Below are positions 1,281 to 37,340 of a stretch of DNA of 64,000 nt, in pieces (within the stretch, counting starts at the first letter, position 1; each line of letters opens with the position of its first letter). Below the pieces are notes generated by a model. It was not told where the DNA came from. It searched no databases and was given only the letters and a program-made list of their open reading frames with translations. The stretch spans positions 434,001 to 498,000 of the forward strand of contig OZ251248.1 in the NCBI GenBank assembly GCA_965240325.2, read 5' to 3'. The position numbers were made by a program, and so were the translations under genes. The DNA comes from Rebecca billardiae RCC1528 (Eukaryota > Protista > Haptophyta).

Positions 1281-1861
<581 letters not shown>

Positions 1862-2783: not shown

Positions 2784-3845
2784 ATGGTCGGCGTGAAGAA
2801 CCAGAAGCGCGCAGTGTGCGAACATGTTGGCTGCTCCAAGGTGCCTTCGTTTGGCATGCCGGGCGATGCGCGTGCCAGCCGGTGCGCTACACACAAGCTG
2901 GCCGGCATGGTCGACCTGAAGAGCAGCAAGTGTGATCACGCAGGCTGCACCAAGTGGCCTTCATTCGGCATGCCGGGCGACGCGTGCGCCAGCCGGTGCG
3001 CTGCGCACAAGCTGGCCGGCATGGTCGACCTGAATCACCCCAAGTGTGATCACACAGGCTGCACCAAGCAGCCTTACTTCGGGATGCCGGGCGACGCGCG
3101 CGCCAGCCGGTGCGCTGTGCACAAGCTGGCCGGCATGGTCGACCTGAAGAACCGCAAGTGTGAGCACACAGGCTGCACCAAGCAGCCTTCGTTCGGCATG
3201 CCGGGCGACGCGTGCGCCAGCCGGTGCGCTACGCACAAGCTGGCCGGCATGGTCGACCTGAAGCACCCCAAGTGTGATCACGCAGGCTGCACCAAGGTGC
3301 CTTTGTTCGGCATGCCGGGCGACGCGCGCGCCAGCCGGTGCGCTACGCACAAGCTGGCCGGCATGGTCGACGTGGTGAGCCGCAAGTGTGATCACGCCCG
3401 CTGCACCAAGCGGCCTTCGTTCGGCATGCCGGGCGGCGCGCGCGCCAGCCGGTGCGCTGCGCACAAGCTGGCCGGCATGGTCGACCTGAAGAGCCGCAAG
3501 TGTGATCACACAGGCTGCACCAAGGGGCCTTCGTTCGGCATGCCGGGCGACGCGCGCGCCAGCCGGTGCGCTGTGCACAAGCTGGCCGGCATGAAGCGCC
3601 TCAGGAGTGGTGCGCACATTCGGCACAAGCGTGGCCTGGAGCAAGGCTCGAGCACCACAGCGTCGAGCGCCGCCAAGCGACAGCGGACGCGCACCAGCAG
3701 CACAGGCACGACCTCTGACGCCGCAGCAGCCGCAGCGCAGCCGCGGCCGCGGTCGCAGCTGCCGCCGGTGGTCAGGGCCCGCGTTGCATCGACGCCACTA
3801 CCGCATTCTGCACGGCCTGTGGTGATGGCTAGGCGGGTCAACTGA
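2784..3845 (+). CDS. EsV-1-7-like Cys-rich repeat protein, copy 1 (7 repeats)
   Basis: Starts at the ATG of MVGVKNQK, the first ATG shared by the copies; the frame is open from 2589, so the true start is uncertain. 7 x 38-aa CxxxxC...FG.PG...C..HK..GM repeats, then a basic tail. Confidence 0.8.
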   Translation: MVGVKNQKRAVCEHVGCSKVPSFGMPGDARASRCATHKLAGMVDLKSSKCDHAGCTKWPSFGMPGDACASRCAAHKLAGMVDLNHPKCDHTGCTKQPYFGMPGDARASRCAVHKLAGMVDLKNRKCEHTGCTKQPSFGMPGDACASRCATHKLAGMVDLKHPKCDHAGCTKVPLFGMPGDARASRCATHKLAGMVDVVSRKCDHARCTKRPSFGMPGGARASRCAAHKLAGMVDLKSRKCDHTGCTKGPSFGMPGDARASRCAVHKLAGMKRLRSGAHIRHKRGLEQGSSTTASSAAKRQRTRTSSTGTTSDAAAAAAQPRPRSQLPPVVRARVASTPLPHSARPVVMARRVN

Positions 3846-3892
3846 CCGCCGCCCGGCGCGCCGCCGCTACCGCCGCCGCCGCCGCTGTGCTC

Positions 3893-4402
3893 TCGCGCGA
3901 GGAGATCGCAGGACCGATCGTCGAGTTGCTCGCCGAGTTCCACGAGCGCGCGCGCGTGCTCGCGGCGAGCGGCGCCGACGCGGGCGCGCTCGGTGGATGC
4001 TCGTCTCGCCCGCCGACCTCGAGGCGGAGACGGCGGCGGCGGCAAAGGAGGAGCGCAAGAAGGCGCAGGCGCGCGAGGCGGTGCAGGCAAAGGAGGCGGC
4101 GCGGCTGGCGATGCGCGCCGTGCCGCCCGAGGAGATGTTCCGCCCGGAGAACGACGTGCTCTTCGGACGCGAGGCGCCGTTCACGCAGTGCGCGCCGCGC
4201 GCCGTGCGCCGCGCACGCCACGCGTGCCGCGCCTGCGTCCGCTGCTCACCGCCCCTCGGGCGCTGGCCGACGCCCCCCGGGCTGCAGGTGGGACGACAGC
4301 GGCCTGCCCACGCACGGCGCGGACGGCGAGCCGCTCAGCAAGGGCGCGCGCAAGCGCGCGGAGAAGGCGTTCAGCAAGCACAAGGCCAACTTTGAGAAGT
4401 GA
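3893..4402 (+). pseudogene. Cysteinyl-tRNA synthetase C-terminal fragment (frameshifting ~82-bp deletion; intron 4188-4287)
   Basis: Splicing GT..AG gives VPPEEMFR...FTQ/WDDSGLPTHGADGEPLSKGARKRAEKAFSKHKANFEK*, matching the eukaryotic CysRS C-terminus pattern. Confidence 0.7.
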
Positions 4403-5434
4403 ATGGCCGCCGGCTGCGCCTGACTTGCTTGATTTTGATGTGGCTCAAACCCCGCTGCCGCCCGCTTGCCGCGCGCGACGGATAAATATATACCAAATAG
4501 GCCGCCGCCCGCCGTCTCTGACTCTGAGTCTGAGTCTGAGGCCGTCGGCGTCGGCGGCCCGGTCGCGGACTGCGGCGGGCGCGCCGGCCCGCCCGCCGGG
4601 CGCCGCGCCCCGGGCGCCGCTGCAGCCTGCATGTATGAGTCATCATGTAATATGTATCGGATAATAATTAAATATGTCGTAACCGGGCGTTTATTTACTA
4701 CCGCCACCGGCACTCGTCCGGGCGTCCCGTCGTCTGACGTCATTCATCATCTGAACTGCTGTGCGGACGATTGTACGACTGGCATGCGCGCACTCGATGT
4801 GCCTGCTGTGAAGCTCTTCGTCAGACAGCCCGTCAGTTGACGATACCGACTCATACCGCCGGGGCCACCGGCCGCGAGTTCACGGCGGTGTCGGCGCACT
4901 TCGTCTTCGTATCCAGTCTGACAACCGCTCTCCATTCCCGTTGCGAAGTCGACCCACGACACATGTGGGCGGCGCCAAGGTGACGGCGCCCGCGCCTGCG
5001 GCCCGCAGTCGGCGGTGCCGAAGCCGAGCTTTGCTCGCCACGCACGGCTGTCTGTCTGTCACCGATCCACGCGCAGCACGTCGGCCGGCCTGCCTCATCG
5101 CGTGAGGCAGCAAGGCGGCGGAACGCCGAGGGATGCGAGCGCTTCCGCGAGCGCTCCCGCGAGCGTGATGTGCGCGAGAGCTCACCAGAAGCGGTCGAGA
5201 GGCGCAGGGGCTCCGAGGTGCCGACAAGGGTGGTCGTGCCGACGCCATCGGGTGGCGCGGGCCGAACCGGCGGCGCAGAAGCGAAAACCTCACAAATCGC
5301 CTGGAAAACGGGAAACGTTCATCAAAGAACTCTGGGCGCAGGACTGCTGCAGCCCTCTGCGTGGGCGAGGAGCGGTCGTCGGCCAGCGGGGCGACGCACG
5401 CGCCAGCCGGTGCGCTGTGGACAAGCTGGCCGGC

Positions 5435-6382
5435 ATGGTCGGCGTGAAGAACCAGAAGCGCGCAGTGTGCGAACATGTTGGCTGCACCAAGGTGCCTTCG
5501 TTTGGCATGCCGGGCGACGCGCGCGCCAGCCGGTGCGCTACGCACAAGCTGGTTGGCATGGTCGACCTGAAGAACCCCAGGTGTGATCGCACGGGCTGCA
5601 CCACGCGGCCTTACTTCGGGATGCCGGGCGACGCGTGCGCCAGCCGGTGCGCTACGCACAAGCTGGGTGGCATGGTCGACGTGGTGAGCCGCAAGTGTGA
5701 TCACACAGGCTGCACCATGCGGCCTTCGTTCGGCATGCCGGGCGACGCGCGCGCCAGCCGGTGTGCTACGCACAAGCTGGGTGGCATGGTCGACGTGGTG
5801 AGCCCCAAGTGCGGTCACGCGGGCTGCACCAAGTGGCCTTCATTCGGCATGCCGGGCGACAAGCGCGCCAGCCGGTGCGCTACGCACAAGCTGGGTGGCA
5901 TGGTCGACGTGGTGAGCCGCAAGTGTGATCACACAGACTGCAACACGCGGCCTTTGTTCGGCATGCCGGACGACGCGTGCGCCAGCCGGTGCGCTACGCA
6001 CAAGCTGGCCGGCATGGTCGACGTGGTGAGCCGCAAGTGTGATCACGCCCGCTGCACCAAGCGGCCTTCGTTTGGCATGCCGGGCGACGCGCGCGCCAGC
6101 CGGTGCGCTGTGCACAAGCTGCCCGGCATGAAGCGCCTCAGGAGTGGTGCGCACATTCGGCACAAGCGTGGCCTGGAGCAAGGCTCGAGCACCACAGCGT
6201 CGAGCGCCACCAAGCGACAGCGGACGCGCACCAGCAGCACAGGCACGACCTCTGACGCCGCAGCAGCCGCAGCGCAGCCGCGGCCGCGGTCGCAGCTGCC
6301 GCCGGTGGTCAAGGCCCGCGTTGCATCGACGCCACTACCGCATACTGCACGGCCTGTGGTGATGGCTAGGCGGGTCAACTGA
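5435..6382 (+). CDS. EsV-1-7-like repeat protein, copy 2 (6 repeats)
   Basis: 948 bp = 6x114+264; frame open from 5015. Confidence 0.8.
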   Translation: MVGVKNQKRAVCEHVGCTKVPSFGMPGDARASRCATHKLVGMVDLKNPRCDRTGCTTRPYFGMPGDACASRCATHKLGGMVDVVSRKCDHTGCTMRPSFGMPGDARASRCATHKLGGMVDVVSPKCGHAGCTKWPSFGMPGDKRASRCATHKLGGMVDVVSRKCDHTDCNTRPLFGMPDDACASRCATHKLAGMVDVVSRKCDHARCTKRPSFGMPGDARASRCAVHKLPGMKRLRSGAHIRHKRGLEQGSSTTASSATKRQRTRTSSTGTTSDAAAAAAQPRPRSQLPPVVKARVASTPLPHTARPVVMARRVN

Positions 6383-6426
6383 CCGCCGCCCGGCGCGCCG
6401 CCGCCGCCGCCGCCACCGCTGTGCAC

Positions 6427-6839
6427 TCGCGCGAGCAGATCGCAGGGCCAATCGTCGAGGTGCTCGCCGAGATCTGCGAGCGCGTGCGCGTGCTCGCGGC
6501 GAGCGGCGTCGACGCGGGCGCGCTCGGTGGATGCTCGTCTCGCCCGCCGACCTCGAGCCGGAGGCAGTGGCGGAGGTGAAGGAGGAGCGCAAGAAGGCGC
6601 AGGCGCGTGAGGCGGTGCAGGCAAAGGAGGCGGCGCGGCTGGAGATGCGCGCCGTGTCGCCCGAGCAGATGTTCCGCCCAGTGAATGACGTGCTCTTCGG
6701 ACGCGAGGCGCCGTTCACGCAGTGCGCGCCCCGCGCCGTGCGCCGCGCGCGCTACGCGTGTCGCGCCTGTGTCCGCCGGCGCAAGCGCGCGGAGAAGGTG
6801 TTCAGCAAGCACAAGGTCAAGGCCATCTTTGTGAAGTGA
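6427..6839 (+). pseudogene. CysRS C-terminal fragment, further deleted (Y type)
   Basis: Homologous to 3893-4402 but lacks the intron acceptor and the WDDSGLPTH segment. Confidence 0.6.
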
Positions 6840-8125
6840 ATGGCCGCCGTCTGCGCCCGACTTGCTTGATGTGGCGCAAACCCCGCTGCCGCCCGCGTGC
6901 CGTGCTCGACGGATATAGCCGCTGCACGCGTACAGCAGCGGCAGCGCAGTCGTCAGTCCGGCCCGCCGCCCGTCACTACTGTCTACTCACTCTGCAGCGG
7001 CACGCCAAGCACCGTATATATAAGGTTGAACTTTTCCTTTGGTCCGATCTGTATATCTAGCTGATGAACTATATATATATATATATAACGACTAATGCCG
7101 TAATAACGGCGTACGTAATAGTTGAATAAACGGCCGGCGCCACGGGCACTGATGCGACCGTATGGCGTATATCGAGTAGTATCGACTATATCGCGGATAT
7201 ATATATGCTGAAACTACTACGTACTCCGCGCGCCGCCTGCGGCCCGTGCCACAGTGACTTTAACCTGTTTCTCAAAGACTCAGAGCAGGCCCGTACCGTG
7301 GTAGTCTACTGTCTCCCTGGACCTGGTAGTCTACTCACTACGTCTACCGTCCTGACGGTATAATCAACGCCGTACGGTCTAGGCTCGGCCGGCCCGCCGC
7401 GGACGGGCTCGCGGAGCGGACTGCGCGCCGCTGCATTTAACTACGTCATCAAGTGTACGCGTCACTATGCTGACTGTAGTACCGGCTAGCATGCGCACTC
7501 CGCCTGCTGTTACACTCTTCAGGCAGCCGGCGTCAGTCCGTTCACCGTTGAATGTTAATTATTGATGCCGATACCGGGCACCACGGGGCTTCGTCGATCT
7601 TCGTGTCCAGTCTGACAACCGCCCCGTTCCCGTTGCGGAGTCGCCCCAGGACACCTGTGAGCGGCACCAACGTGACGGCGCCCGCGCCTGCGGCCCGCAG
7701 TCGGCGGTGCCGAAGCCGAGATTTGCTCGCCACGCACGGCTGTCTGTCTGTCACCGATCCACACGCAGCACGTCAGCCTGCCTCATCGCGTGAGGCAGCA
7801 AGGCGGTGGAACGCCGAGGGATGCAAGCGCTTCCGCGAGCGCTCCCGCGAGCGTGATGTGCGCGAGAGCTCACCAGAAGCGGTCGAGAGGCGAGGGGCTC
7901 CGAGGTGCCGACAAGGGTGGTCGTGCCGACGCCATCGGAGTGGCGCGGGCCGAACCGGCGGCGGCGCAGAAGCGAAAACCTCACAAATCGTCTGGAAAAC
8001 GGGAAACGTTCATCAAAGAACTCTGGGCGCAGGACTGCTGCAGCCCTCTGCGTGGGCGAGGAGCGGTCGTCGGCCAGCGGGGCGACGCACGCGCCAGCCG
8101 GTGCGCTGTGGACAAGCTGGCCGGC

Positions 8126-9415
8126 ATGGTCGGCGTGAAGAACCAGAAGCGCGCAGTGTGCGAACATGTTGGCTGCACCAAGGTGCCTTCGTTTGGCATG
8201 CCGGGCGACGCGCGCGCCAGCCGGTGCGCTGCGCACAAGCTGGCCGGCATGGTTGACGTGAAGAATAGCAGTTGTGCTCACACCGGCTGCACCAAGGGGC
8301 CTTCGTTTGGCATGCCGGGCGACGCGCGCGCCAGCCGGTGCGCTGTGCACAAGCTGGCCGGCACGGTCGACCTGAAGCACCCCAAGTGCGATCACACCGG
8401 CTGCACCAAGGTGCCTTCGTTCGGCATGCTGGGCGACGCGCGCCCCAGCCGGTGCGCTGCGCACAAGCTGGCTGGCATGGTCGACCTGAAGAACCCCAAG
8501 TGTGATCACACAGGCTGCACCAAGCGGCCTTCGTTCGGCATGCCGGGCGACGCGGGCTCCAGCCGGTGCGCTACGCACAAGCTTGCCGGCATGGTCGACC
8601 TGAAGAGCCGCAAGTGCGATCACACCGGCTGCACCACGCGGCCTTACTTCGGGATGCCGGGCGACGCGGGCGCCAGCCGGTGCGCTACGCACAAGCTGGT
8701 TGGCATGGTCGACCTGAAGAGCCGCAAGTGTGACCACGCAGGCTGCACTAAGCAGCCTTTGTTCGGCATGCCGGGTGACGCGCGCGCCAGCCGGTGCGCT
8801 GTGCACAAGCTGACCGGCATGGTCGACGTGGTGAAGCGCAAGTGTGATCACACAGGCTGCACCATGCGGCCTTCGTTCGGCATGCCGGGCGACGCGCGCG
8901 CCAGCCGGTGCGCTACGCACAAGCTGGCCGGCATGGTCGACGTGAACAACCCCAAGTGTGAGCACGCGAGCTGCACCAAGCGGCCTTCGTTCGGCATGCC
9001 GGGCGACGTGCGCGCCAGCCGGTGCGCTACGCACAAGCTGGCCGGCATGGTCGACGTGATGCACCCCAAGTGTGAGCACGCGAGCTGCACCAAGTGGCCT
9101 TCATTCGGCATGCCGGGCGACGCGCGCGCCAGCCGGTGCGCTGTGCACAAGCTGGCTGGCATGAAGCGCCTTGGGAGTGGTGCGCACATTCGGCACAAGC
9201 GTGGCCTGGAGCAAGGCTCGAGCACCACAGCGTCGAGCGCCGCCAAGCGACAGCGGACGCGCACCAGCAGCACAGGCACGACCTCTGACGCCGCAGCAGC
9301 CGCAGCGCAGCCGCGGCCGCGGTCGCAGCTGCCGCCGGTGGTCAAGGCCCGCGTTGCATCGACACCACTACCGCATACTGCACGGCCTGTGGTGATGGCT
9401 AGGCGGGTCAACTGA
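8126..9415 (+). CDS. EsV-1-7-like repeat protein, copy 3 (9 repeats)
   Basis: 1290 bp = 9x114+264; frame open from 7790. Confidence 0.8.
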   Translation: MVGVKNQKRAVCEHVGCTKVPSFGMPGDARASRCAAHKLAGMVDVKNSSCAHTGCTKGPSFGMPGDARASRCAVHKLAGTVDLKHPKCDHTGCTKVPSFGMLGDARPSRCAAHKLAGMVDLKNPKCDHTGCTKRPSFGMPGDAGSSRCATHKLAGMVDLKSRKCDHTGCTTRPYFGMPGDAGASRCATHKLVGMVDLKSRKCDHAGCTKQPLFGMPGDARASRCAVHKLTGMVDVVKRKCDHTGCTMRPSFGMPGDARASRCATHKLAGMVDVNNPKCEHASCTKRPSFGMPGDVRASRCATHKLAGMVDVMHPKCEHASCTKWPSFGMPGDARASRCAVHKLAGMKRLGSGAHIRHKRGLEQGSSTTASSAAKRQRTRTSSTGTTSDAAAAAAQPRPRSQLPPVVKARVASTPLPHTARPVVMARRVN

Positions 9416-9459
9416 CCGCTGCCCGGCACGCCGCCGCCGCCGCCGTCGCCGCAGCAATT

Positions 9460-9969
9460 TCGCGCGAGGAGATCGCAGGGCCGATCGTCGAGGTGCTCAC
9501 CGAGCTCCGCGAGCGCGTGCGCGTGCTCCGGGCGAGCGGCGCCGAGGCGGGCGCGCTCGCTGGATGCTCGTCTCGCCTGCCGACCTCGAGCCGGAGGCAG
9601 TGGCGGAGGTGAAGGAGGAGCGCAAGAAGGCGCAGGCGCGTGAGGCGGTGCAGGCAAAGGAGGCGGCGCGGCTGGCGATGCGCGCCGTGCCGCCCGAGCA
9701 GATGTTCCGCCCCGAGAACGACGTGCTCTTCGGACGCGAGGCGCCGTTCACGCAGTGCGCGCCGCGCGCACTGCGCCGCGCGCGCCACGCGTGCCGCGCC
9801 TGCGTCCGCCGCTCACCGCCCCTCGGGCGCTGGCCGACGCCCCCCGGGCTGCAGGTGGGACGACAGCGGCCTGCCCACCCACGGCGCAGACGGCGAGCCG
9901 CTCAGCAAGGGCGCGCGCAAGCGCGCGGAGAAGGCGTTCAGCAAGCACAAGGCCAACTTTGAGAAGTGA
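9460..9969 (+). pseudogene. CysRS C-terminal fragment (X type)
   Basis: Same structure as 3893-4402. Confidence 0.65.
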
Positions 9970-11144
9970 ATGGCCGCCGGCTGCGCCTGACTTGCTAGCA
10001 GCTTGATTTTGATGTGGCTCAAACCCCGCTGCCGCCCGCTTGCCGCGCGCGACGGATAAATAATATATATATATATACCAAATAGGCCGCCGCCCGCCGT
10101 CTCTGACTCTGAGTCTGAGTCTGAGGCCGTCGGCGTCGGCGGCCCGGTCCGGCGGACCGTGCGGCGGGCGCGCCGGCCCGCGCCCGCCGGGCGCCGCGCC
10201 CGCCCGGGCGCCGCTGCAGCCTGCCGCACTAGTACAAGAGTGCGTACAGTTTATTTGTTTTAACGTGCGTAAGGCTCACGGTGGCAGGTTGCCGCGCCAT
10301 CCTTCATCGCACGCTCTCCGAAGAGAGACCTGGAAACTGGGGGTTTGAACCCATGACCTCAGACGCAAGTGACTAAATAGTAAATACTATTAAATAGTAA
10401 ATATGTCGTAACCGCCACCGGCACTCGTCCGGGCGTCCCGTCGTCTGACGTCATTCATCTGAACTGCTGTGCGGACGATTGTACGACTGGCATGCGCGCA
10501 CTCGATGTGCCTGCTGTGAAGCTCTTCGTCAGACAGCCCGTCAGTTGACGATACCGACTCATACCGCCGGGGCCACCGGCCGCGAGTTCACGGCGGTGTC
10601 GGCGCACTTCGTCTTCGTGTCCAGTCTGACAACCGCTCTCCATTCCCGTTGCGAAGTCGACCCACGACACATGTGGGCGGCGCCAAGGTGACGGCGCCCG
10701 CGCCTGCGGCCCGCAGTAGGCGGTGCCGAAGCCGAGCTTTGCTCGCCACGCACGGCTGTCTGTCTGTCACCGATCCACGCGCAGCACGTCGGCCGGCCTG
10801 CCTCATCGCGTGAGGCAGCAAGGCGGTGGAACGCCGAGGGATGCGAGCGCTTCCGCGAGCGCTCCCGCGAGCGTGATGTGCGCGAGAGCTCACCAGAAGC
10901 GGTCGAGAGGCGAGGGGCTCCGAGGTGCCGACAATGGTGGTCGTGCCGACGCCATCGGAGTCGCGCGGGCCGAACCGGCGCGGCTGGAGAAGCGGAAATC
11001 GTCATGCGGAAAACGGGAAACGTTCATCGTCGGCGCAGAGGAAGCACTGCTGCAGGCTGCAGCCCTCCGCCTGGGCGAGGAGCGGTCGTCGGCCAGCGGG
11101 GCGACGCGCGCGCCAGCCGGTGCGCTGTGGACAAGCTGGCTGGC

Positions 11145-12320
11145 ATGGTCGGCGTGAAGCACCAGAAGCGCGCAGTGTGCGAACATGTTGGCTGCACCAA
11201 GGTGCCTTCGTTTGGCATGCCGGGCGACGCGCGCGCCAGCCGGTGCGCTACACACAAGCTGGCCGGCATGGTCGACGTGGTGAGCCGCAGGTGTGATCAC
11301 GCGGGCTGCACCACGCGCCCTTTGTGTGGCATGCCGGGTGACGCGCGCGCCAGCCGGTGCGCTGCGCACAAGCTGGCTGGCATGATCGACGTGGTGAGCC
11401 GCAAGTGTGAATGTACCGGCTGCACCAAGCGGCCTTACTTCGGCATGCCGGGCGACGCGCGCGCCAGCCGGTGCGCTACGCACAAGCTGGCCGGCATGGT
11501 CGACCTGAAGCACCCCAAGTGCGATCACACCGGCTGCACCAAGGTGCCTTCGTTCGGCATGCTGGGCGACGCGCGCCCCAGCCGGTGCGCTGCGCATAAG
11601 CTGGCCGGCATGGTCGACGTGGTGAGCCGCAAGTGTGATCACGCAGGCTGCACCAAGGTGCCTTCGGTCGGCATGCCGGGCGACGCGCGCGCCAGCCGGT
11701 GCGCTACGCACAAGCTGGTTGGCATGGTCGACCTGAAGCACCCCAAGTGTGATCACACAGGCTGCACCAAGCGGCCTTCGTTCGGCATGCCGGGCGACGC
11801 GTGCGCCAGCCGGTGCGCTACGCACAAGCTGGGTGGCATGGTCGACGTGGTGAGCCGCAAGTGTGATCACACAGACTGCAACACGCGGCCTTTGTTCGGC
11901 ATGCCGGACGACGCGTGCGCCAGCCGGTGCGCTACGCACAAGCTGGCCGGCATGGTCGACGTGGTGAGCCGCAAGTGTGATCACGCCCGCTGCACCAAGC
12001 GGCCTTCGTTTGGCATGCCGGGCGACGCGCGCGCCAGCCGGTGCGCTGTGCACAAGCTGGCTGCCATGACGTGCCTTGGGAGTGGTGCGCACATTCGGCA
12101 CAAGCGTGGGCTGGAGCAAGGCTCGAGCACCACAGCGTCGAGCGCCGCCAAGCGACAGCGGACGCGCACCAGCAGCACAGGCACGACCTCTGACGCCGCA
12201 GCAGCCGCAGCGCAGCCGCGGCCGCGGTCGCAGCTGCCGCCGGTGGTCAAGGCCCGCGTTGCATCGACACCACTATCGCATTCTGCACGGCCTGTGGTGA
12301 TGGCTAGGCGGGTCAACTGA
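11145..12320 (+). CDS. EsV-1-7-like repeat protein, copy 4 (8 repeats)
   Basis: 1176 bp = 8x114+264; frame open from 10878. Confidence 0.8.
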   Translation: MVGVKHQKRAVCEHVGCTKVPSFGMPGDARASRCATHKLAGMVDVVSRRCDHAGCTTRPLCGMPGDARASRCAAHKLAGMIDVVSRKCECTGCTKRPYFGMPGDARASRCATHKLAGMVDLKHPKCDHTGCTKVPSFGMLGDARPSRCAAHKLAGMVDVVSRKCDHAGCTKVPSVGMPGDARASRCATHKLVGMVDLKHPKCDHTGCTKRPSFGMPGDACASRCATHKLGGMVDVVSRKCDHTDCNTRPLFGMPDDACASRCATHKLAGMVDVVSRKCDHARCTKRPSFGMPGDARASRCAVHKLAAMTCLGSGAHIRHKRGLEQGSSTTASSAAKRQRTRTSSTGTTSDAAAAAAQPRPRSQLPPVVKARVASTPLSHSARPVVMARRVN

Positions 12321-12364
12321 CCGCCGCCCGGCGCGCCGCCGCCGCCGCCGCCACCGCTGTGCTC

Positions 12365-12777
12365 TCGCGCGAGGAGATCGCAGGGCCAATCGTCGAGGTG
12401 CTCGCCGAGATCTGCGAGCGCGTGCGCGTGCTCGCGGCGAGCGGCGTCGACGCGGGCGCGCTCGGTGGATGCTCGTCTCTCCCGCCGACCTCGAGGCGGA
12501 AGCGGCGGCGGCGGCAACGGAGGAGCGCAAGGAGGCGCAGGCGCGCGAGGCGGTGCAGGCAAAGGAGGCGGCGCGGCTGGAGATGCGCGCCGTGTCGCCC
12601 GAGCAGATGTTCCGCCCAGTGAATGACGTGCTCTTCGGACGCGAGGCGCCGTTCACGCAGTGCGCGCCCCGCGCCGTGCGCCGTGCGCGCTACGCGTGTC
12701 GCGCCTGTGTCCGCCGGCGCAAGCGCGCGGAGAAGGTGTTCAGCAAGCACAAGGTCAAGGCCATCTTTGTGAAGTGA
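12365..12777 (+). pseudogene. CysRS C-terminal fragment (Y type)
   Basis: Same structure as 6427-6839. Confidence 0.6.
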
Positions 12778-13012
12778 ATGGCCGCCGTCTGCGCCCGACT
12801 TGCTTGATGTGGCGCAAACCCCGCTGCCGCCCGCGTGCCGTGCTCGACGGATATAGCCGCTGCACGCGTACAGCAGCGGCAGCGCAGTCGTCAGTCCGGC
12901 CCGCCGCCCGTCACTACTGTCTACTCGCTCTGCAGCGGCACGCCAAGCACCGTATATATAAGGTTGAACTTTTCCTTTGGTCCGATCTGTATATCTAGCT
13001 GATGAACTATAT

Positions 13013-15787: not shown

Positions 15788-15831
15788 CCGCCGCCCGGCG
15801 CGCCGCCGCCGCCGCCGCCACCGCTGTGCTC

Positions 15832-22066: not shown

Positions 22067-22110
22067 CCGCCGCCCGGCGCGCCGCCGCCGCCGCCGCCAC
22101 CGCTGTGCTC

Positions 22111-25366: not shown

Positions 25367-25410
25367 CCGCCGCCCGGCGCGCCGCCGCTGCCGCCGCCGC
25401 CGCCGCAATC

Positions 25411-28523: not shown

Positions 28524-28567
28524 CCGCCGCCCGGCGCGCCGCCGCTGCCGCCGCCACCGCTGTGCTC

Positions 28568-28980
28568 TCGCGCGAGCAGATCGCAGGGCCAATCGTCGAG
28601 GTGCTCGCCGAGATCTGCGAGCGCGTGCGCGTGCTCGCGGCGAGCGGCGTCGACGCGGGCGCGCTCGGTGGATGCTCGTCTCTCCCGCCGACCTCGAGGC
28701 GGAAGCGGCGGCGGCGGCAAAGGAGGAGCGCAAGGAGGCGCAGGCGCGCGAGGCGGTGCAGGCAAAGGAGGCGGTGCGGCTGGAGATGCGCGCCGTGTCG
28801 CCCGAGCAGATGTTCCGCCCAGTGAATGACGTGCTCTTCGGACGCGAGGCGCCGTTCACGCAGTGCGCGCCCCGCGCCGTGCGCCGTGCGCGCTACGCGT
28901 GTCGCGCCTGCGTTCGCCGGCGCAAGCGCGCGGAGAAGGTGTTCAGCAAGCACAAGGTCAAGGCCATCTTTGTGAAGTGA
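28568..28980 (+). pseudogene. CysRS C-terminal fragment (Y type)
   Basis: Same structure as 6427-6839. Confidence 0.6.
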
Positions 28981-29217
28981 ATGGCCGCCGTCTGCGCCCG
29001 ACTTGCTTGATGTGGCGCAAACCCCGCTGCCGCCCGCGTGCCGTGCTCGACGGATATAGCCGCTGCACGCGTACACTGAGTCACTACCGTACAGCAGCGG
29101 CAGCGCAGTCGTCAGTCCGGCCCGCCGCCCGTCACTACTGTCTACTCACTCTGCAGCGGCACGCCAAGCACCGTATATATAAGGTTGAACTTTTCCCGTT
29201 TGGTCCGATCTATATAT

Positions 29218-30961
29218 GTCTAGCCGTCCTCGTGAACGCCGACGCCAACTGCTGGCCGAAGGTGGGCACGCCGCCTGGCATGTCGATGCCGAGGCGGCTG
29301 CGTGTGTTCCTACTCAGTGGGATTTACGTGTCCTCATGCCTTGGCGAGCGGCAGCAGATGCGGTGGGCATGCCGCTCGCCGTCGACGAGACGCGGTGCGT
29401 GAGTGATCCCGCGCGGACGTCCGCTGACGGAAGGCTGAGCGCCTGCGGACTCGTCGACTGAACCTCCACCTGACCGCCCGGGAGCAGCACTGCTGGGGAC
29501 CTAACCTGAAAAACCCAATCGTGTTGGGAGGCAGGGGGTCACATGAGCCCTAAGTGCAGCGCCGCAAGACCGGGCGGTCGGACGGCGGGTGTTGTGATCC
29601 CGCCGCCCGAGCACCAGACCAACGGGCCCTGGGTGGGCGGGTTGCCGAAAGATGTTGGTCGGTGCACGCGACGCGCCACCCGCGTGCGAGCCGCCGCCGC
29701 CGGCGACGCAGGACGAGCTTGGCTGGAGCCATCTCGCACGCCGCGCCTGGCGAAGCAGGCGGCAGAGGCCGGCGCCGGAAATCGATCTCCTGGGCGGCAG
29801 AACAACCCGGACAGACTGTTTGTCCGGGAGCAGCGCCCTTTGAGGCGATGGTCTGGTAGAGGGCGATGTGGCTGATGAGCGGCGCTGGCGCCCGGCGTTC
29901 TTGTCGTCCTCTTAGACAATCAGTTATTGTACCAATAACCCCACGTCTAGCCGTCCTCGTGAACGCCGACGCCAACTGCTGGCCGAAGGTGGGCACGCCG
30001 CCTGGCATGTCGATGCCGAGGCGGCTGCGTGTGTTCCTACTCAGTGGGATTTACGTGTCCTCATGCCTTGGCGAGCGGCAGCAGATGCGGTGGGCATGCC
30101 GCTCGCCGTCGACGAGACGCGGTGCGTGAGTGATCCCGTTTCATGGTGTGTTGGGGAGCACCGCGTGGAGGAGAATCCCATTGAGTGATGGGAAGGAACG
30201 GGGGCAAGGCACGTGTGAGTCGCGCACGCACGAGGGCCGGCCAGCGGGGGCTGGGCAGGTGGGGCAGTGCGAGTGAGACGGAACCCGAATAGGAGAGATA
30301 GCAGGCAGCCGGCCCCGAGGCGCGGCGCTGCGGAAGCAGGAGAAGGCTAGACGGCCTTTGCGGATGCTGTGAATGGCCCGCGGGTGCGCACGGGGCCCGG
30401 CGCGCGGTGTGCCGCCAGCGGTCCTTGTGTAGGAGCCGGCTGGCGTTGGCACCGGGGCGATCCCGAGGCAGGGCGGGAGAGATGGAGCAGCGATCCGCGT
30501 GGGGGCGCACCCACGGAGGAGGAGGCATGTGGCGAAGAGGGAACGGTGCGATCGGGGCGGGTGCGGAAGAGCCACAGGGTGCGCACGCACACAGAGAGAG
30601 AAGAGGCGGTGGCCCGAAGCGCGAGGGGGCGCGATGCGGAGCGTTGCTTACCGCCGAGTTGCCGAAAGATGTTGGTCGGTGCACGCGACGCGCCACCCGC
30701 GTGCGAGCCGCCGCCGCCGGCGACGCAGGACGAGCTTGGCTGGAGCCATCTCGCACGCCGCGCCTGGCGAAGCAGGCGGCAGAGGCCGGCGCCGGAAATC
30801 GATCTCCTGGGCGGCAGAACAACCCGGACAGACTGTTTGTCCGGGAGCAGCGCCCTTTGAGGCGATGGTCTGGTAGAGGGCGATGTGGCTGATGAGCGGC
30901 GCTGGCGCCCGGCGTTCTTGTCGTCCTCTTAGACAATCAGTTATTGTACCAATAACCCCAC
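29218..30961 (-). mobile_element. (TA)n-inserted element with A-u1-B-A-u2-B split direct repeats (PAT/TOC1-like, non-autonomous)
   Basis: On the minus strand: A ~30961-30658, unique, B ~30139-29945 abutting A ~29944-29641, unique, B ~29411-29218. Flanked by TA runs with no other TSD. Confidence 0.7.
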
Positions 30962-31204
30962 ATATATATATGTCTAGCTGAACTACTAACTATAATATAT
31001 ATATATATATATATTAACGAATATAACGCCGTATTCGTATTACGTGGCGTAATAGTTTTATATAAAACGGCCGCGCGACGCTGCGGGAGTCCGGGGCACG
31101 TATCGGCGAGTATCGACTATCGCGGACTGATATGATGAAACTACGACTACGTACTCCGCGCCGCCTGCGGCCCGTGCCACAGTGACTTTAACCTGTTTCT
31201 CAAA

Positions 31205-31852
31205 GACTCAGAGCAGGCCCGTACCGTGGTAGTCTACTGTCTCCCTGGACCTGGTACGGTCTACCGTCATCACTAGTTAGTAGTTACGTCTACCGTCTAC
31301 GGTACCGTACTTACTACGGTCTAGGCTCGGCCCGCGGGCCCGCCGCGGACGGGCTCGCGGAGCGGACTGCGCGCCGCTGCATTTAACTACGTCGTCATCA
31401 AGTGTACGCGTCACTATGCTGATGACTGTAGTACCGGCTAGCATGCGCACTCCGCCTGCTGTTACACTCTTCAGGCAGCCGGCGTCAGTCCGTTCACCGT
31501 TGAATGTTGATGCCGATACCGGGCACCACGGGACTCAGAGCAGGCCCGTACCGTGGTAGTCTACTGTCTCCCTGGACCTGGTAGTAGCCTACTCATCACT
31601 AGTTAGTAGTTACGTCTACCGTCTACGGTACCGCGTACTTACTACGGTCCGTAGGCTCGGCCCGCGGGCCCGCCGCGGACGGGCTCGCGGAGCGGACTGC
31701 GCGCCGCTGCATTTAACTACGTCATCAAGTGTACGCGTCACTATGCTGACTGTAGTACCGGCTAGCATGCGCACTCCGCCTGCTGTTACACTCTTCAGGC
31801 AGCCGGGTTAGCCCGTTCACCGTTGAATGTTGATGCCGATACCGGGCACCAC
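31205..31852 (+). repeat. Local ~325-bp tandem duplication of the type-A upstream region
   Basis: GACTCAGAGCAGGCCCGTACC...GGGCACCACGGG occurs twice in succession (~31205 and ~31532). Confidence 0.8.
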
Positions 31853-32387
31853 GGGGCTTCGTCGATCTTCGTGTCCAGTCTGACAACCGCCCCGTTCCCG
31901 TTGCGGAGTCGCCCCAGGACACCGGTGAGCGGCACCAACGTGACGGCGCCCGCGCCTGCAGCCCGCAGTCGGCGGTGCCGAAGCCGAGATTTGCTCGCCA
32001 CGCACGGCTGTCTGTCTGTCACCGATCCACGCGCAGCACGTCGGCCTGCCTCATCGCGTGAGGCAGCAAGGCGGTGGAACGCCGAGGGCTGCGAGCGCTT
32101 CCGCGAGCGCTCCCGCGAGCGTGATGTGCGCACGAGCTCACCAGAAGCGGTCGAGAGGCGAGGGGCTCCGAGGTGCCGACAAGGGTGGTCGTGCCAACGC
32201 CGTCGGAGTGGCGCGGGCCGAACCGGCGCGGCTGGAGAAGCGGAAATCGTCATGCGGAAAACGGGAAACGTTCATCAAAGAACTCTGGGCGCAGGACTGC
32301 TGCAGCCCTCTGCGTGGGCGAGGAGCGGTCGTCGGCCAGCGGGGCGACGCACGCGCCAGCCGGTGCGCTGTGGACAAGCTGGCCGGC

Positions 32388-33449
32388 ATGGTCGGCGTGA
32401 AGAACCAGAAGCGCGCAGTGTGCGAACATGTTGGCTGCACCAAGGTGCCTTCGTTTGGCATGCCGGGCGACGCGCGCGCCAGCCGGTGCGCTGCGCACAA
32501 GCTGGCCGGCATGGTTGACGTAAAGAATAGCAGTTGTGCTCACACCGGCTGCACCAAGGGGCCTTCGTTTGGCATGCCGGGTGACGCGCGCGCCAGCCGG
32601 TGCGCTGCGCACAAGCTGGCAGGCATGGTCGACCTGAAGCACCCCAAGTGTGATCACACAGGCTGCACCAAGCAGCCTTACTTCGGGATGCCGGGTGACG
32701 CGCGCGCCAGCCGGTGCGCTGCGCACAAGCTGGCCGGTATGGTCGACCTGAAGAACCCCAAGTGCGATCACACCGGCTGCACCAAGGTGCCTTCGTTCGG
32801 CATGCCGGGCGACGCGCGCGCCAGCCGGTGCGCTACGCACAAGCTTGCCGGCATGGTCGACCTGAAGAGCCGCAAGTGTGATCACACAGGCTGCACCACG
32901 CGGCCTTACTTCGGGATGCCGGGCGACGCGGGCGCCAGCCGGTGCGCTACGCACAAGCTGGCCGGCATGGTCGACCTGAAGAGCCGCAAGTGTGATCACA
33001 CAGGCTGCACCAAGCGGCCTTCGTTCGGCATGCCGGGCGACGCGCGCGCCAGCCGGTGCGCTACGCACAAGCTGGCCGGCATGGTCGACCTGAAGAACCG
33101 CAAGTGTGATCACACAGGCTGCACCAAGCAGCCTTCGTTCGGCATGCCGGGCGACGCGCGCGCCAGCCGGTGCGCTGTGCACAAGCTGGCTGCCATGACG
33201 TGCCTCGCGAGTGGTGCGCACATTCGGCACAAGCGTGGGCTGGAGCAAGGCTCGAGCACCAAAGCGTCGAGCGCCGCCAAGCGACAGCGGACGCGCACCA
33301 GCAGCACAGGCACGACCTCTGTCGCCGCAGCAGCCGCAGCGCAGCCGCGGCCGCGGTCGCAGCTGCCGCCGGTGGTCAAGGCCCGCGTTGCATCGACACC
33401 ACTACCGCATTCTGCACGGCCTGTGGTGATGGCTAGGCGGGTCAACTGA
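32388..33449 (+). CDS. EsV-1-7-like repeat protein, copy 9 (7 repeats)
   Basis: 1062 bp = 7x114+264; frame open from 32058. Confidence 0.8.
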   Translation: MVGVKNQKRAVCEHVGCTKVPSFGMPGDARASRCAAHKLAGMVDVKNSSCAHTGCTKGPSFGMPGDARASRCAAHKLAGMVDLKHPKCDHTGCTKQPYFGMPGDARASRCAAHKLAGMVDLKNPKCDHTGCTKVPSFGMPGDARASRCATHKLAGMVDLKSRKCDHTGCTTRPYFGMPGDAGASRCATHKLAGMVDLKSRKCDHTGCTKRPSFGMPGDARASRCATHKLAGMVDLKNRKCDHTGCTKQPSFGMPGDARASRCAVHKLAAMTCLASGAHIRHKRGLEQGSSTKASSAAKRQRTRTSSTGTTSVAAAAAAQPRPRSQLPPVVKARVASTPLPHSARPVVMARRVN

Positions 33450-33493
33450 CCGCCGCCCGGCGCGCCGCCGCCGCCGCCGCCACCGCTGTGCTC

Positions 33494-34003
33494 TCGCGCG
33501 AGGAGATCGCAGGGCCGATCGTCGAGGTGCTCGCCGAGTTCTGCGAGCGCGTGCGCGCGCTCGCGGCGAGCGGCGCCGACGCGGGCGCGCTCGGTGGATG
33601 CTCGTCTCGCCCGCCGACCTCGAGGCGGAGACGGCGGCGGCGGCAACGGAGGAGCGCAAGAAGGCGCAGGCGCGCGAGGCGGTGCAGGCAAAGGAGGCGG
33701 CGCGGCTGGTGATGCGCGCCGTGCCGCCCGAGCAGATGTTCCGCCCGGAGAACGACGTGCTCTTCGGACGCGAGGCGCCGTTCACGCAGTGCGCGCCGCG
33801 CGCACCGCGCCGCGCGCGCCACGCGTGCCGCGCCTGCGTCCGCCGCTCACCGCCCCTCGGGCGCTGGCCGACGCCCCCCGGGCTGCAGGTGGGACGACAG
33901 CGGCCTGCCCACGCACGGCACAGACGGCGAGCCGCTCAGCAAGGGCGCGCGCAAGCGCGCGGAGAAGGCGTTCAGCAAGCACAAGGCCAACTTTGAGAAG
34001 TGA
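33494..34003 (+). pseudogene. CysRS C-terminal fragment (X type)
   Basis: Same structure as 3893-4402. Confidence 0.65.
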
Positions 34004-34885
34004 ATGGCCGCCGGCTGCGCCTGACAGTGACTTGCTTGATTTTGATGTGGCTCAAACCCCGCTGCCGCCCGCTTGCCGCGCGCGACGGATAAATATATAC
34101 CAAATAGGCCGCCGCCCGCCGTCTCTGACTCTGAGTCTGAGTCTGAGGCCGTCGGCGTCGGCGGCCCGGTCGCGGACTGCGGCGGGCGCGCCGGCCCGCC
34201 CGCCGGGCGCCGCGCCCCGGGCGCCGCTGCAGCCTGCCGCACTCATAGTCATACAGTCATACAATGAAGTACAGAATAACAGAGTACTGATGACTAAATA
34301 TGTCGTAACCGCCACCGGCACTCGTCCGGGCGTCCCGTCGTCTGACGTCATTCATCTGAACTGCTGTGCGGACGATTGTACGACTGGCATGCGCGCACTC
34401 GATGTGCCTGCTGTGAAGCTCTTCGTCAGACAGCCCGTCAGTTGACGATACCGACTCATACCGCCGGGGCCACCGGCCGCGAGTTCACGGCGGTGTCGGC
34501 GCACTTCGTCTTCGTGTCCAGTCTGACAACCGCTCTCCATTCCCGTTGCGAAGTCGACCCACGACACATGTGGGCGGCGCCAACGTGACGGCGCCCGCGC
34601 CTGCGGCCCGCAGTCGGCGGTGCCGAAGCCGAGCTTTGCTCGCCACGCACGGCTGTCTGTCTGTCACCGATCCACGCGCAGCACGTCGGCCGGCCTGCCT
34701 CATCGCGTGAGGCAGCAAGGCGGTGGAACGCCGAGGGATGCGAGCGCTTCCGCGAGCGCTCCCGCGAGCGTGAGGTGCGCGAGAGCTCACCAGAAGCGGT
34801 CGAGAGGCGAGGGGCTCCGAGGTGCCGACAAGGGTGGTCGTGCCGACGCCATCGGAGTGGCGCGGGCCGAACCGGCGGCGCAGAA

Positions 34886-35902
34886 CAGGGATGGGCAGAT
34901 TCGCCGAATGGCCTCAGCCTTCGCTTCTTCGCCGAATTCGCCGAATTCGGCGAATTCGGCGAATATGGCGAATTTCTGCGTTGCGAACATTTCCGCGCCA
35001 TGTGTCACCCGAGCTGACAGGCTACGAGTGTCAGGATGACGCGTGGCACACCCCGTCGACTTCCAGGGACCGTGCCCAAGCTGTGAAGCCTCTACGCGGC
35101 CGAGCTCTGGGACGCGCGCGGCGGGTCAGACATCTTCATTGCGCGCCATTGCGCGCCTCGCGTGGCACGGGCTTATGACACGGACCTCGGCCCGGCCAGC
35201 TTCCTCAGCCTTCGCTAAGTTGGCGGCAAGTCTCAGTGCAAGCGTGCCAGGAAGCATTGTGCTCGAGTCTGCCGCGCCGCCCGGCGAACGCCAGCCTCGC
35301 CGATGCCACGACCACCAAGGCCGGCGCACAGGCTGTCCGTCGGCCTGAGTTCACGGCTGCTCGGCAGTCCGCCTTCAGCGTATGCACGCAACGCTGCCCG
35401 CGCCAGAAGTCGTCGCGACGCTCGTCTGACGCCTCGTCAGAGCGCACGTCGCTACACTTGTAGCGGAGATGCGCTGCGTGACCCTGTGCGTCAACGACGC
35501 GTGCAAGGCGCCGAGCTGCCCGCGGCCACCTACTGACAACGTAGCGCGGCGCCGAGTTCAGCAGGCGCGCCCGCTCTCCGCGCTCGACGACTGGCTGCCG
35601 CCGCCGCTGCGGAGGCATGCAAGCGCCGACCGCGTCATATTCGACAGCCCGCTTGGCGAGTTAGCGTCGTACGCCGCACGCCTCGGCGCGGCGGACGCGC
35701 ACGTGGCGGCGCGCGGGTCGCGCTCCGATGCGCCGAGCGGCGGCCGTCGGCCGCCGGCCGGGAGATACTGAGTCCGGCAACGGCAATACCGCCCGGATCG
35801 GGGATTTCGCCACCTTCGCCGAATGCGCCCAGCCTTCGCCGTTCGCCGATTCGGCGAATTCGGCGAATTGAAAATTCGGCGATTCGCTTGCGCCCATCCC
35901 TG
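34886..35902. mobile_element. Non-autonomous hAT-like element (~1.0 kb)
   Basis: 8-bp TSD GCGCAGAA, 11-bp TIR CAGGGATGGGC, many subterminal TTCGCCGAA motifs at both ends. The site is empty in paralogous units such as copies 1-3. Confidence 0.9.
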
Positions 35903-36050
35903 GCGCAGAAGCGAAAACCTCACAAATCGTCTGGAAATTGGAAAACGGGAAACGTTCCAACGTTCATCAAAGAACTCTGGGCGCAGGACTGCTGCAGCCC
36001 TCTGCGTGGACGCACGCGCCAGCCGGTGCGCTGTGGACAAGCTGGCCGGC

Positions 36051-37340
36051 ATGGTCGGCGTGAAGAACCAGAAGCGCGCAGTGTGCGAACATGTTGGCTG
36101 CACCAAGGTGCCTTCGTTTGGCATGCCGGGCGACGCGCGCGCCAGCCGGTGCGCTGCGCACAAGCTGGCCGGCATGGTTGACGTGAAGAATAGCAGTTGT
36201 GCTCATACCGGCTGCACCAAGGGGCCTTCGTTTGGCATGCCGGGCGACGCGCGCGCCAGCCGGTGCGCTGTGCACAAGCTGGCCGGCATGGTCGACCGGA
36301 AGCACCCCAAGTGCGATCACACCGGCTGCACCAAGGTGCCTTCGTTCGGCATGCCGGGCGACGCGCGCGCCAGCCGGTGCGCTGCGCACAAGCTGGCCGG
36401 CATGGTCGACGTGGGGCACCCCAAGTGTGAGCACGTGGGCTGCACCACGCGGCCTGTGTTTGGCATGCCGGGCGACGCACGCGCCAGCCGGTGCGCTACG
36501 CACAAGCTTGCCGGCATGGTCGACCTGAAGAGCCGCAAGTGTGATCACACAGGCTGCACCACGCGGCCTTACTTCGGGATGCCGGGCGACGCGGGCGCCA
36601 GCCGGTGCGCTACGCACAAGCTGGTTGGCATGGTCGACCTGAAGAGCCGCAAGTGTGACCACGCAGGCTGCACCAAGCAGCCTTTGTTCGGCATGCCGGG
36701 TGACGCGCGCGCCAGCCGGTGCGCTGTGCACAAGCTGACCGGCATGGTCGACGTGGTGAAGCGCAAGTGTGATCACACAGGCTGCACCATGCGGCCTTCG
36801 TTCGGCATGCCGGGCGACGCGCGCGCCAGCCGGTGCGCTACGCACAAGCTGGCCGGCATGGTCGACGTGAACAACCCCAAGTGTGAGCACGCGAGCTGCA
36901 CCAAGCGGCCTTCGTTCGGCATGCCGGGCGACGTGCGCGCCAGCCGGTGCGCTACGCACAAGCTGGCCGGCATGGTCGACGTGATGCACCCCAAGTGTGA
37001 GCACGCGAGCTGCACCAAGGGGCCTTCATTCGGCATGCCGGGCGACGCACGCACCAGCCGGTGCGCTACGCACAAGCTGGCTGCCATGAAGCGCCTTGAG
37101 TGTGTTGCGCACATTCGGCACAAGCGTGGCCTGGAGCAAGGCACGAGCACCAAAGCGTCCAGCGCCGCCAAGCGACAGCGGACGCGCACCAGCAGCACAG
37201 GCACGACCTCTGACGCCGCAGCAGCCGCAGCGCAGCCGCGGCCGCGGTCGCAGCTGCCGCCGGTGGTCAAGGCCCGCGTTGCATCGACACCACTACCGCA
37301 TTCTGCACGGCCTGTGGTGATGGCTAGGCGGGTCAACTGA
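36051..37340 (+). CDS. EsV-1-7-like repeat protein, copy 10 (9 repeats)
   Basis: 1290 bp = 9x114+264; hAT insertion ends ~150 bp upstream of the ATG. Confidence 0.8.
   Translation: MVGVKNQKRAVCEHVGCTKVPSFGMPGDARASRCAAHKLAGMVDVKNSSCAHTGCTKGPSFGMPGDARASRCAVHKLAGMVDRKHPKCDHTGCTKVPSFGMPGDARASRCAAHKLAGMVDVGHPKCEHVGCTTRPVFGMPGDARASRCATHKLAGMVDLKSRKCDHTGCTTRPYFGMPGDAGASRCATHKLVGMVDLKSRKCDHAGCTKQPLFGMPGDARASRCAVHKLTGMVDVVKRKCDHTGCTMRPSFGMPGDARASRCATHKLAGMVDVNNPKCEHASCTKRPSFGMPGDVRASRCATHKLAGMVDVMHPKCEHASCTKGPSFGMPGDARTSRCATHKLAAMKRLECVAHIRHKRGLEQGTSTKASSAAKRQRTRTSSTGTTSDAAAAAAQPRPRSQLPPVVKARVASTPLPHSARPVVMARRVN

Follow-up and report, generated by a model that had tools for sequence, protein, structure and literature searches.

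How do ten neighbouring genes built from one cysteine-rich module come to differ from each other, and what do their products bind? The question is raised by a 64,000-nucleotide stretch of contig OZ251248.1 of the haptophyte Rebecca billardiae RCC1528 (positions 434,001 to 498,000, hereafter the window), which contains a cluster of genes of the EsV-1-7 family. The predicted proteins are arrays of 38-residue modules followed by a short basic tail. We give an about even chance to a reading in which these nuclease-less arrays bind DNA in a modular, zinc-dependent manner and generate their repertoire by module shuffling together with changes at about five codons.

Tandem Repeats Finder, applied to the whole window, located ten forward-strand arrays with a period of 114 bp in the interval from 2.7 to 37.1 kb. 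A regular expression for the module (C.{4}C.{16}C..H.{12}), run on the translations of the ten open reading frames (ORFs), counted 7, 6, 9, 8, 9, 6, 13, 8, 7 and 9 modules in genes 1 to 10, 82 in total. Both scans agree with a preliminary description of the locus, which had listed ten tandem genes with 82 repeats of exactly 114 bp; its ten strings of residues at module position 9 were recovered letter for letter, and its bounds coincide with the conserved ATG of gene 1 (2784) and the stop of gene 10 (37340). Self-BLAST with unit 3 (6383-9415) as query against the window showed that gene and flanks were duplicated together. Homology extends from 1848 to 37990, and the flanks are 91-97% identical among all ten units. 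Sequence unrelated to the units has been inserted twice, between genes 5 and 6 (about 16537-20360) and between genes 8 and 9 (about 29217-31109); the ORFs of the insertion at 16537-20360 had no Pfam match. In the following list the letters of the cassette maps name families of modules clustered at no more than 3 nt.

1848..37990 (+), whole cluster: ten segmental tandem duplicates of about 3 kb, each a gene with its 5' and 3' flanks (self-BLAST).
2784..3845 (+), gene 1: 7 modules, array 2817-3614, 86-residue tail; position-9 string VWQQVRG; cassette map ..FAG.., these cassettes being common with gene 6.
5435..6382 (+), gene 2: 6 modules, array 5468-6151; position-9 string VRRWRR; cassette map ....H.; module 5 identical to module 7 of gene 4.
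8126..9415 (+), gene 3: 9 modules, array 8159-9184; position-9 string VGVRRQRRW; cassette map CBIJDEKL.; Pfam E 1.8e-122.
11145..12320 (+), gene 4: 8 modules, array 11178-12089; position-9 string VRRVVRRR; cassette map M..NO.H.; cassettes M, N and O common with gene 7.
14498..15787 (+), gene 5: 9 modules, array 14531-15556; position-9 string VGVVRQGRR; cassette map CBIJDE...; modules 1-6 collinear with gene 3.
21119..22066 (+), gene 6: 6 modules, array 21152-21835; position-9 string VRQQVV; cassette map ..FAG.
23621..25366 (+), gene 7: 13 modules, array 23654-25135; position-9 string VRRVVVRQRWRWR; cassette map M...NOA.APAP.; Pfam E 3.5e-177.
27357..28523 (+), gene 8: 8 modules, array 27381-28292; position-9 string WGQGLGQR; cassette map.BQBQ..., with an internal B Q B Q duplication; upstream region diverged.
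32388..33449 (+), gene 9: 7 modules, array 32421-33218; position-9 string VGQVRRQ; cassette map CB..DA.
36051..37340 (+), gene 10: 9 modules, array 36084-37109; position-9 string VGVRRQRRG; cassette map CB..DEKL.; modules 5-8 nearly identical to gene 3.

The modules are uniform in length. All 82 fit C-x4-C-x16-C-x2-H-x12 with a start-to-start spacing of always 38 residues, and the approximately 9.3 kb of array contain neither an indel nor a stop codon. Positions C1, C6, C23, H26, P10, M14, S21, R22, A24, K27 and L28 never vary, which includes the four cysteine and histidine residues described earlier as invariant. According to entropy, the most variable positions are 35, 9, 36, 37, 25, 4, 2 and 11. 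The preliminary description had rightly pointed to 9, 11 and 35-37; position 8, also named there, varies modestly, and 25, 4 and 2 had been missed. The three window proteins scanned match Pfam EsV_1_7_cys (PF19114, gathering score 25 bits) with E 1e-109 to 1e-177, 355-574 bits and 8-13 stretches, and in these three no second Pfam family was found above the cut-off as an independent stretch, the sub-threshold overlaps being spurious. The clustered genes belong to the known EsV-1-7 family, as had been supposed before this profile comparison. The motif of the family was reportedly defined by Macaisne and colleagues in 2017 as tandem C-x4-C-x16-C-x2-H followed by about 12 residues. Long antisense ORFs lie on the reverse strand over every array (for example 7751-9079, 10890-12119 and 14399-15586). 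They are by-products of the GC-rich repeats, since they have no family match and the forward frame carries a coding-like base composition at third codon positions.

The arrays differ primarily in the order in which modules are combined. The nearest relative of a module was its positional counterpart in another gene (median 3 of 114 nt different), and neighbours in the same gene differed by a median of 10 nt. A counterpart within 2 nt was present in another gene for 38 of the 82 modules, compared to 4 with such a counterpart in their own gene. Clustering yielded 17 shared cassette families. Gene 7 has a two-module duplication inside its array (A P A P), and its modules 10 and 12 are identical. 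The arrays are mosaics: modules that are older and had diverged beforehand were rearranged through unequal crossing-over or gene conversion, in part as two-module duplications. Most of the between-gene differences stem from the reshuffling of the 17 cassettes within young duplicates of about 3 kb, not from point changes. The earlier statement that no two position-9 strings are the same is correct, but the strings differ chiefly through recombination of cassettes and do not represent a point-diversified repertoire. Point changes do occur: module 4 of gene 3 and module 4 of gene 5 differ solely by CGG>GTG (R>V) at codon 9.

Nonsynonymous and synonymous nucleotide diversity (piN and piS) were computed over 72 internal modules. 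The ratio piN/piS was 0.79 overall, 0.32 for scaffold codons and 2.0 for codons 2, 4, 9, 11, 25 and 34-37. Changes were also counted by parsimony on a tree built from the 58 distinct modules, on which recombination inflates homoplasy; the counts of nonsynonymous to synonymous changes were as follows.

Codon 9: 20:1, 3.8 times the mean synonymous rate, p 3e-6.
Codon 25: 16:2, 3.1 times the mean synonymous rate, p 3e-4.
Codon 35: 19:0, 2.95 times the mean synonymous rate, p 1e-4.
Codon 36: 16:2, 2.3 times the mean synonymous rate, p 0.005.
Codon 4: 13:10, 2.5 times the mean synonymous rate, p 0.007.

With CpG transitions left out, codons 4, 9, 25, 35 and 36 changed at 4-5 times the synonymous rate. 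The concentration of variation at a few residues, noted earlier from the repeats themselves, is thus seen again as a nonsynonymous excess at few codons. The variable codons are at least unconstrained inside a constrained scaffold, and the excess suggests diversifying selection acting on them. As a separate observation, CpG transitions made up 46% of the synonymous changes among modules (module DNA, 2817-37109), which suggests CpG hypermutability and therefore possibly cytosine methylation in the bodies of the module genes.

Relatives of the arrays were collected with gene 3 as the reference for homologue searches and modelling. Scanning IMG/VR with a degenerate DNA pattern for C..HK..GMVDV yielded at least 120 loci (L001-L120), many of them labelled as giant-virus metagenome-assembled genomes. 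The loci listed contain 109 ORFs with at least two modules, and 86 of these 109 consist of an N-terminal array followed by a domain of 170-260 residues (for example L012:743-1990 on the reverse and L028:3416-5329 on the forward strand). Most IMG/VR loci of this family have a GC content of about 34%. Invariant in the C-terminal domain of about 185 residues are D, R-P-D, E-x-D-E-x-x-H, R and R-x-N-P-D. The motif RPD..E.DE..H..R[FYW]NPD (RPD motif), which was used for counting, occurs in 79 of the 120 best homologues of gene 3 and in 86 of the 109 IMG/VR ORFs. The domain has no Pfam family match, and a profile search of PDB sequences retrieved only the Hjc resolvase (E 0.24), aligned with the D...E.K stretch of Hjc. 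Its AlphaFold model (predicted local distance difference test score, pLDDT, 87; predicted template modelling score, pTM, 0.78) had its best PDB matches among the PD-(D/E)xK nucleases BstEII, McrC, Hjc, Bax1, R2 endonuclease, AbaSI and PspGI, with probabilities of 0.9-0.99 and E of 1e-3 to 1e-2. Judged by these fold matches, the domain is a probable PD-(D/E)xK-type nuclease-like domain.

The family defined by this domain is large. A profile search of 1.84 billion representatives found 7486 clusters at E <=1e-3 and 1444 at <=1e-30. Among the best 150 of the 7486 clusters, 113 have at least one strict CCCH module; CCCC variants occur in others. In some members the N-terminal slot is occupied instead by C2H2 fingers (P0182, P0222), Bro-N (P0245, E 1e-14) or PriCT_2. 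P0005 and P0020, to which the window genes are most closely related (57% identity), also carry the nuclease-like motif; they (L121:3452-4777 and L122:1864-3063) adjoin an RNR small-subunit gene on compact metagenome contigs of 66% GC, which may derive from a GC-rich giant virus or from an endogenous element of a related alga. The arrays likely bind DNA because relatives place them in the targeting slot before a probable DNA endonuclease, and the thousands of relatives with arrays before a nuclease-like domain point to DNA as the ligand. The strong positive charge of the window arrays (about +3 net charge per module, isoelectric point about 10) fits with DNA binding. A nucleic-acid-binding role had been proposed in the preliminary description. 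It gains indirect support from the close relatives, most of which fuse such arrays to a PD-(D/E)xK-like domain, but the window genes themselves are devoid of this domain: tblastn and a six-frame hidden Markov model (HMM) search found it in no frame of the window and returned module-to-module matches only. Neither search, nor a Pfam scan of the ORFs downstream of the arrays, which had no match, revealed a hidden downstream exon or a nuclease remnant in the window.

The same module positions tend to vary in these relatives. In 32 distant homologues the within-array variability was highest at position 9 (0.78), followed by 11, 36, 7, 24 and 35, and their variability profile correlated with that of the cluster (Spearman 0.61). 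In 29 nuclease-bearing viral arrays the order was 11, 9, 4, 38, 36, 8, 14 and 25. The dN/dS of viral orthologues, obtained from two informative groups since most same-length groups were identical copies, was 0.42 and 0.20 for arrays and 0.25 and 0.11 for the nuclease-like domain; these values indicate purifying selection on both parts but are not decisive. Further Pfam domains of the homologues (DUF2540, DUF1936, MIZ, FAM86 and others) were spurious overlaps on modules with no independent stretch; the only genuine additional domain was ELO in a single protein, where two gene models may have been joined. Dinoflagellate and metagenome relatives (P0090 and P0095 from Effrenium voratum, P0016, P0049, P0098) have a variant module C-x-C ... 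C-C-x2-C, and the variant modules of P0090, P0095 and similar proteins still carry the FGMPGDARA motif of the window genes. P0090 ends in a different C-terminal domain. A Vsr-like identity for this domain, suggested by a motif, was unsupported by Pfam and PDB sequence searches.

The charge and the CCCH ligand set would suit RNA equally well, as in some CCCH and CCHC zinc modules that bind RNA. We nevertheless regard RNA as a very improbable ligand. Tandem CCCH RNA-binding fingers have a ligand spacing different from the C-x4-C-x16-C-x2-H of the modules. Moreover, the fused domain of the relatives resembles DNA endonucleases (restriction enzymes, Hjc, R2 endonuclease), and the alternative N-terminal partners are DNA binders.

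The fold of the module was modelled with AlphaFold2, metal-free, from an alignment of four-module windows of the cluster with 46 homologue segments. In the four-module model (mean pLDDT 83.6, pTM 0.49) each module is predicted to form two or three very short strands and one helical turn starting at C23 (C23-H26), which is compatible with a knuckle-hairpin-helix zinc module of treble-clef-like type. Judging from motif and model, the modules most likely bind zinc. A Foldseek search of the PDB with the four-module model gave E >=1 throughout, its first-ranked entries being GATA3, LIM tandems, PHD fingers and the nsp13 zinc-binding domain. With VIA-align every Z for the module model stayed below 2, and an HMM search of PDB sequences with the modules found no solved relative. 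The best neighbour among the AFDB Swiss-Prot models was Arabidopsis WRKY19 (residues 60-162), at a non-significant E of 0.15.

Among the weak neighbours, the peptide-bound LIM tandems (LMO2/LMO4-LDB1, Lhx3-Isl1, PINCH), the PHD fingers and the nsp13 domain would suit a different function, in which the arrays serve as scaffolds that bind proteins or peptides, as tandem LIM domains and further treble-clef fingers do, and the variable residues tune partner choice. The Ectocarpus protein IMM is likewise described only as a developmental regulator, its biochemistry not being given. We judge such a scaffold quite unlikely for the window genes. None of the structural matches is significant (E >=0.15; VIA-align Z <2), the modules carry their high net positive charge, and the slot before the nuclease-like domain is otherwise filled by DNA-binding C2H2 and Bro-N domains.

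The ends of the ten genes were compared between the copies. An in-frame ATG, the first coordinate of each gene listed above, lies 8-11 codons 5' of module 1 and is kept in 10 of 10 copies. Translated from ATG 8126, gene 3 and P0005 are collinear from their first residue (57% identity over 253 residues). Each gene probably starts at this conserved ATG, which itself sits within a decayed partial module. Further 5', several indels that are not multiples of three separate the ten copies, and the frame to a shared upstream ATG ('MCARAH') is intact in 5 only; the long bacterial-style ORFs overstate the genes. The two terminal features, with gene 3 as example, are as follows.

8081..8158 (+), decayed partial module before module 1: equivalent 78 bp in the other copies; without C1 and C6, H26 changed to D in 8 of 10 copies (gene 1 and the diverged gene 8 keep H).
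9185..9415 (+), C-terminal tail: 86 residues counted from module position 29, present in all ten genes.

The GC content at third codon positions (GC3) is 0.84 over partial module and array (0.85 in the array of gene 3) and thus coding-like, as in the neighbouring cellular genes (0.89-0.95). Tail and upstream ORF extension show a flat GC3 of 0.68-0.74. The tail is basic, of low complexity, free of indels among the ten copies and without a Pfam domain, with GC at codon positions 1/2/3 of 0.67/0.68/0.74 in gene 3. Its piN/piS is 1.04 (piS 0.036, piN 0.038, overall diversity about 0.037), compared to a diversity of 0.056-0.068 in the non-coding flanks. A conserved tail with clusters resembling nuclear localisation signals had been described. 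The tail is indeed present, but its conservation is about that of the non-coding flanks, and the copies are alike because the duplicates are young, not demonstrably because of selection.

Several of these features would be expected if the cluster had arisen by recent multiplication of a gene fragment that came from a virus and had lost its nuclease domain, and were now largely inert, its copies being unexpressed or without present function and their intact ORFs and ordered variation simply inherited from a functional ancestor: the near identity of the units, flanks included, the neutral ratio and flat GC3 of the tail, the frame-breaking indels in the upstream ORF extensions, the decayed partial module at the 5' end, and a closest relative that is a nuclease-bearing gene beside RNR on a compact GC-rich contig. 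We consider this explanation unlikely. The 82 modules and ten tails contain no stop or frameshift, although the adjacent 5' flanks have indels, and the same start ATG was retained in every copy. The module pairs with the highest similarity show 133 differences, 48 of them synonymous compared to about 24% expected, a rough dN/dS of about 0.55.

The preferred reading, modular DNA binding, can be put as a mechanism. The cluster on the host chromosome is made up of ten young tandem duplicates of one EsV-1-7 gene, whose predicted products carry 6-13 head-to-tail modules of 38 residues and then the short basic tail. Each module would hold one zinc ion through C1, C6, C23 and H26 in a fold of knuckle, short beta hairpin and one helical turn. 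The function would be sequence-directed DNA binding, with a constant scaffold on which residues 9 (with 11), 25, 35-36 (with 37) and 4 set the contacts of each module. The window genes are the nuclease-less counterparts of a very large, mostly giant-virus family that combines the array with a PD-(D/E)xK-type nuclease-like domain. The repertoire changes chiefly at the level of whole modules, which unequal crossing-over and gene conversion add, drop, duplicate and exchange between paralogues; point substitutions at the few variable codons contribute as well. In the alga, the proteins may act today as regulators or as antagonists of viral nucleases.

Several points weigh against modular DNA binding. 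In the literature searched, DNA binding is not directly demonstrated for any EsV-1-7 protein, and the fusion argument extends to the window genes only by analogy because they are without the nuclease-like domain. The nuclease activity of the viral domain is itself deduced from a fold similarity that is borderline. For the module, neither the PDB nor the Swiss-Prot models provided a significant structural match, and the weak top matches include protein-binding LIM tandems besides GATA. As for selection, four-fold degenerate sites span 0-10 changes (mean 2.4), and because synonymous rates are this uneven, a ratio of nonsynonymous to synonymous rates (omega) above 1 is suggestive and not formally proven. 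The tail resembles non-coding DNA, as do the long extensions of the ORFs upstream of the arrays, and since the duplicates are young, individual copies could be inert.

A bolder extension, to which we assign little probability, would place EsV-1-7 arrays beside C2H2 fingers and TAL effectors (TALEs) as a third natural class of DNA reader that is modular and programmable by recombination. Each 38-residue module would read a short DNA step via residues 9/11, 25 and 35-36. In giant viruses the arrays would direct a PD-(D/E)xK nuclease to its targets, and the nuclease-less clusters of the alga would form a diversifying counter-repertoire that might, for example, occupy or mask target sites or regulate integrated viral DNA. 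The ten paralogues offer a natural module-swap series, since genes 3, 5 and 10 share collinear blocks and module 4 of genes 3 and 5 differs by one variable residue. If binding is modular, DNA recognition could be programmed on a new kind of scaffold, and the conflict between giant viruses and their hosts would have a new component; otherwise the cluster is a recent and unremarkable tandem expansion within a known family.

The surroundings of the cluster contain the following cellular genes.

40498-43329 (-), anoctamin gene, a long uninterrupted ORF.
45190-48030 and 49466-52246 (-), two neighbouring Pumilio-family (PUF) genes in the same orientation, long uninterrupted ORFs that may be a tandem duplicate.
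54856-59463 (+), four-domain voltage-gated channel (Ion_trans), a long ORF without obvious introns; an atlas search ranked Oomycota first and Haptophyta next among the clusters nearest to it.

The cluster is located on a host chromosome, because its right flank holds cellular genes as long uninterrupted ORFs. An endogenous giant-virus island at the window was ruled out by this flank and by the GC content, which is uniform at 65-70%. Perfect (AT)36 and (AT)68 repeats lie just 5' of the cluster at 1210-1281 and 1722-1857, with a local GC content of 54%. The end of the window (60872-64000) consists of dense nested tandem repeats with units of 181, 214/421 and 110/222/309 bp that are 92-97% identical and show a strongly negative AT skew. 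Sequencing run X1 contained short divergent fragments on the modules only and shows neither organism nor expression.

EsV-1-7 proteins represent a possible new class of zinc fingers, shared with Nucleocytoviricota and encoded by hundreds of often tandem genes in brown algae. The family is among the largest gene families of these algae and includes the developmental regulator IMM (IMMEDIATE UPRIGHT) of Ectocarpus, in which all members are without another recognisable domain (10.64898/2026.04.27.720984). In the literature searched, neither a ligand nor a nuclease fusion is reported for EsV-1-7. The window genes share the motif, the spacing, the tandem modules, the gene clustering and the lack of an additional Pfam domain with the family as found in gene 7 of Ectocarpus virus EsV-1, in IMM and in the brown-algal arrays. 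Their modules are near-identical, with about 88% DNA identity, and all have 38 residues, whereas those of their EsV-1-7 homologues are 37-39 residues long and far more diverged. Unlike the brown-algal genes, the window genes reside in an alga of 65-70% GC, and their closest relatives carry a nuclease-like domain. With the array-nuclease-like proteins, mostly from giant-virus contigs, they have in common the module family, a collinear N-terminus (57% identity with P0005) and the variable positions; they end, however, in the 86-residue basic tail, with no PD-(D/E)xK-like domain in any frame.

A relationship to the WRKY19-type zinc finger (Pfam PF24906, the N-terminal repeats of Arabidopsis WRKY19) is only suggested. 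Pfam matches to it overlap the modules of homologues, and WRKY19 was the best, non-significant Swiss-Prot neighbour, but PF24906 is not among the Pfam matches of the three window proteins scanned. The model-based match hints that land plants have a related module; one paper states that the EsV-1-7 family is absent from land plants.

Parallels exist outside these families as well. PRDM9 and the KRAB C2H2 arrays likewise combine minisatellite-like zinc modules, a constrained scaffold, a nonsynonymous excess at few positions, and unequal crossing-over with shuffling. The window module, in contrast, has 38 residues and a CCCH ligand set without a C2H2 signature, and is accompanied by no KRAB, SET or other effector. 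Membership in the C2H2 class (C-x2-4-C-x12-H-x3-5-H with TGEKP-type linkers) is contradicted by the different ligand spacing and the lack of a zf-C2H2 Pfam match. TAL effectors resemble the window arrays in that their repeats are near-identical and constant in length, with few variable residues and with a first and a last repeat that differ from the others, and in having repertoires driven by recombination. Their repeats, however, are helical and metal-free with a proven code of one repeat to one base, whereas the window module is of zinc type with at least five separated variable positions. Compared to TALE repeats of 33-35 residues with a di-residue at 12-13, it has 38 residues, Cys/His ligands, almost no helix in the model and variable sites at 4, 9, 25 and 35-36. 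As an analogy, the comparison with TALEs and PRDM9 fits the evolutionary behaviour of the cluster well.

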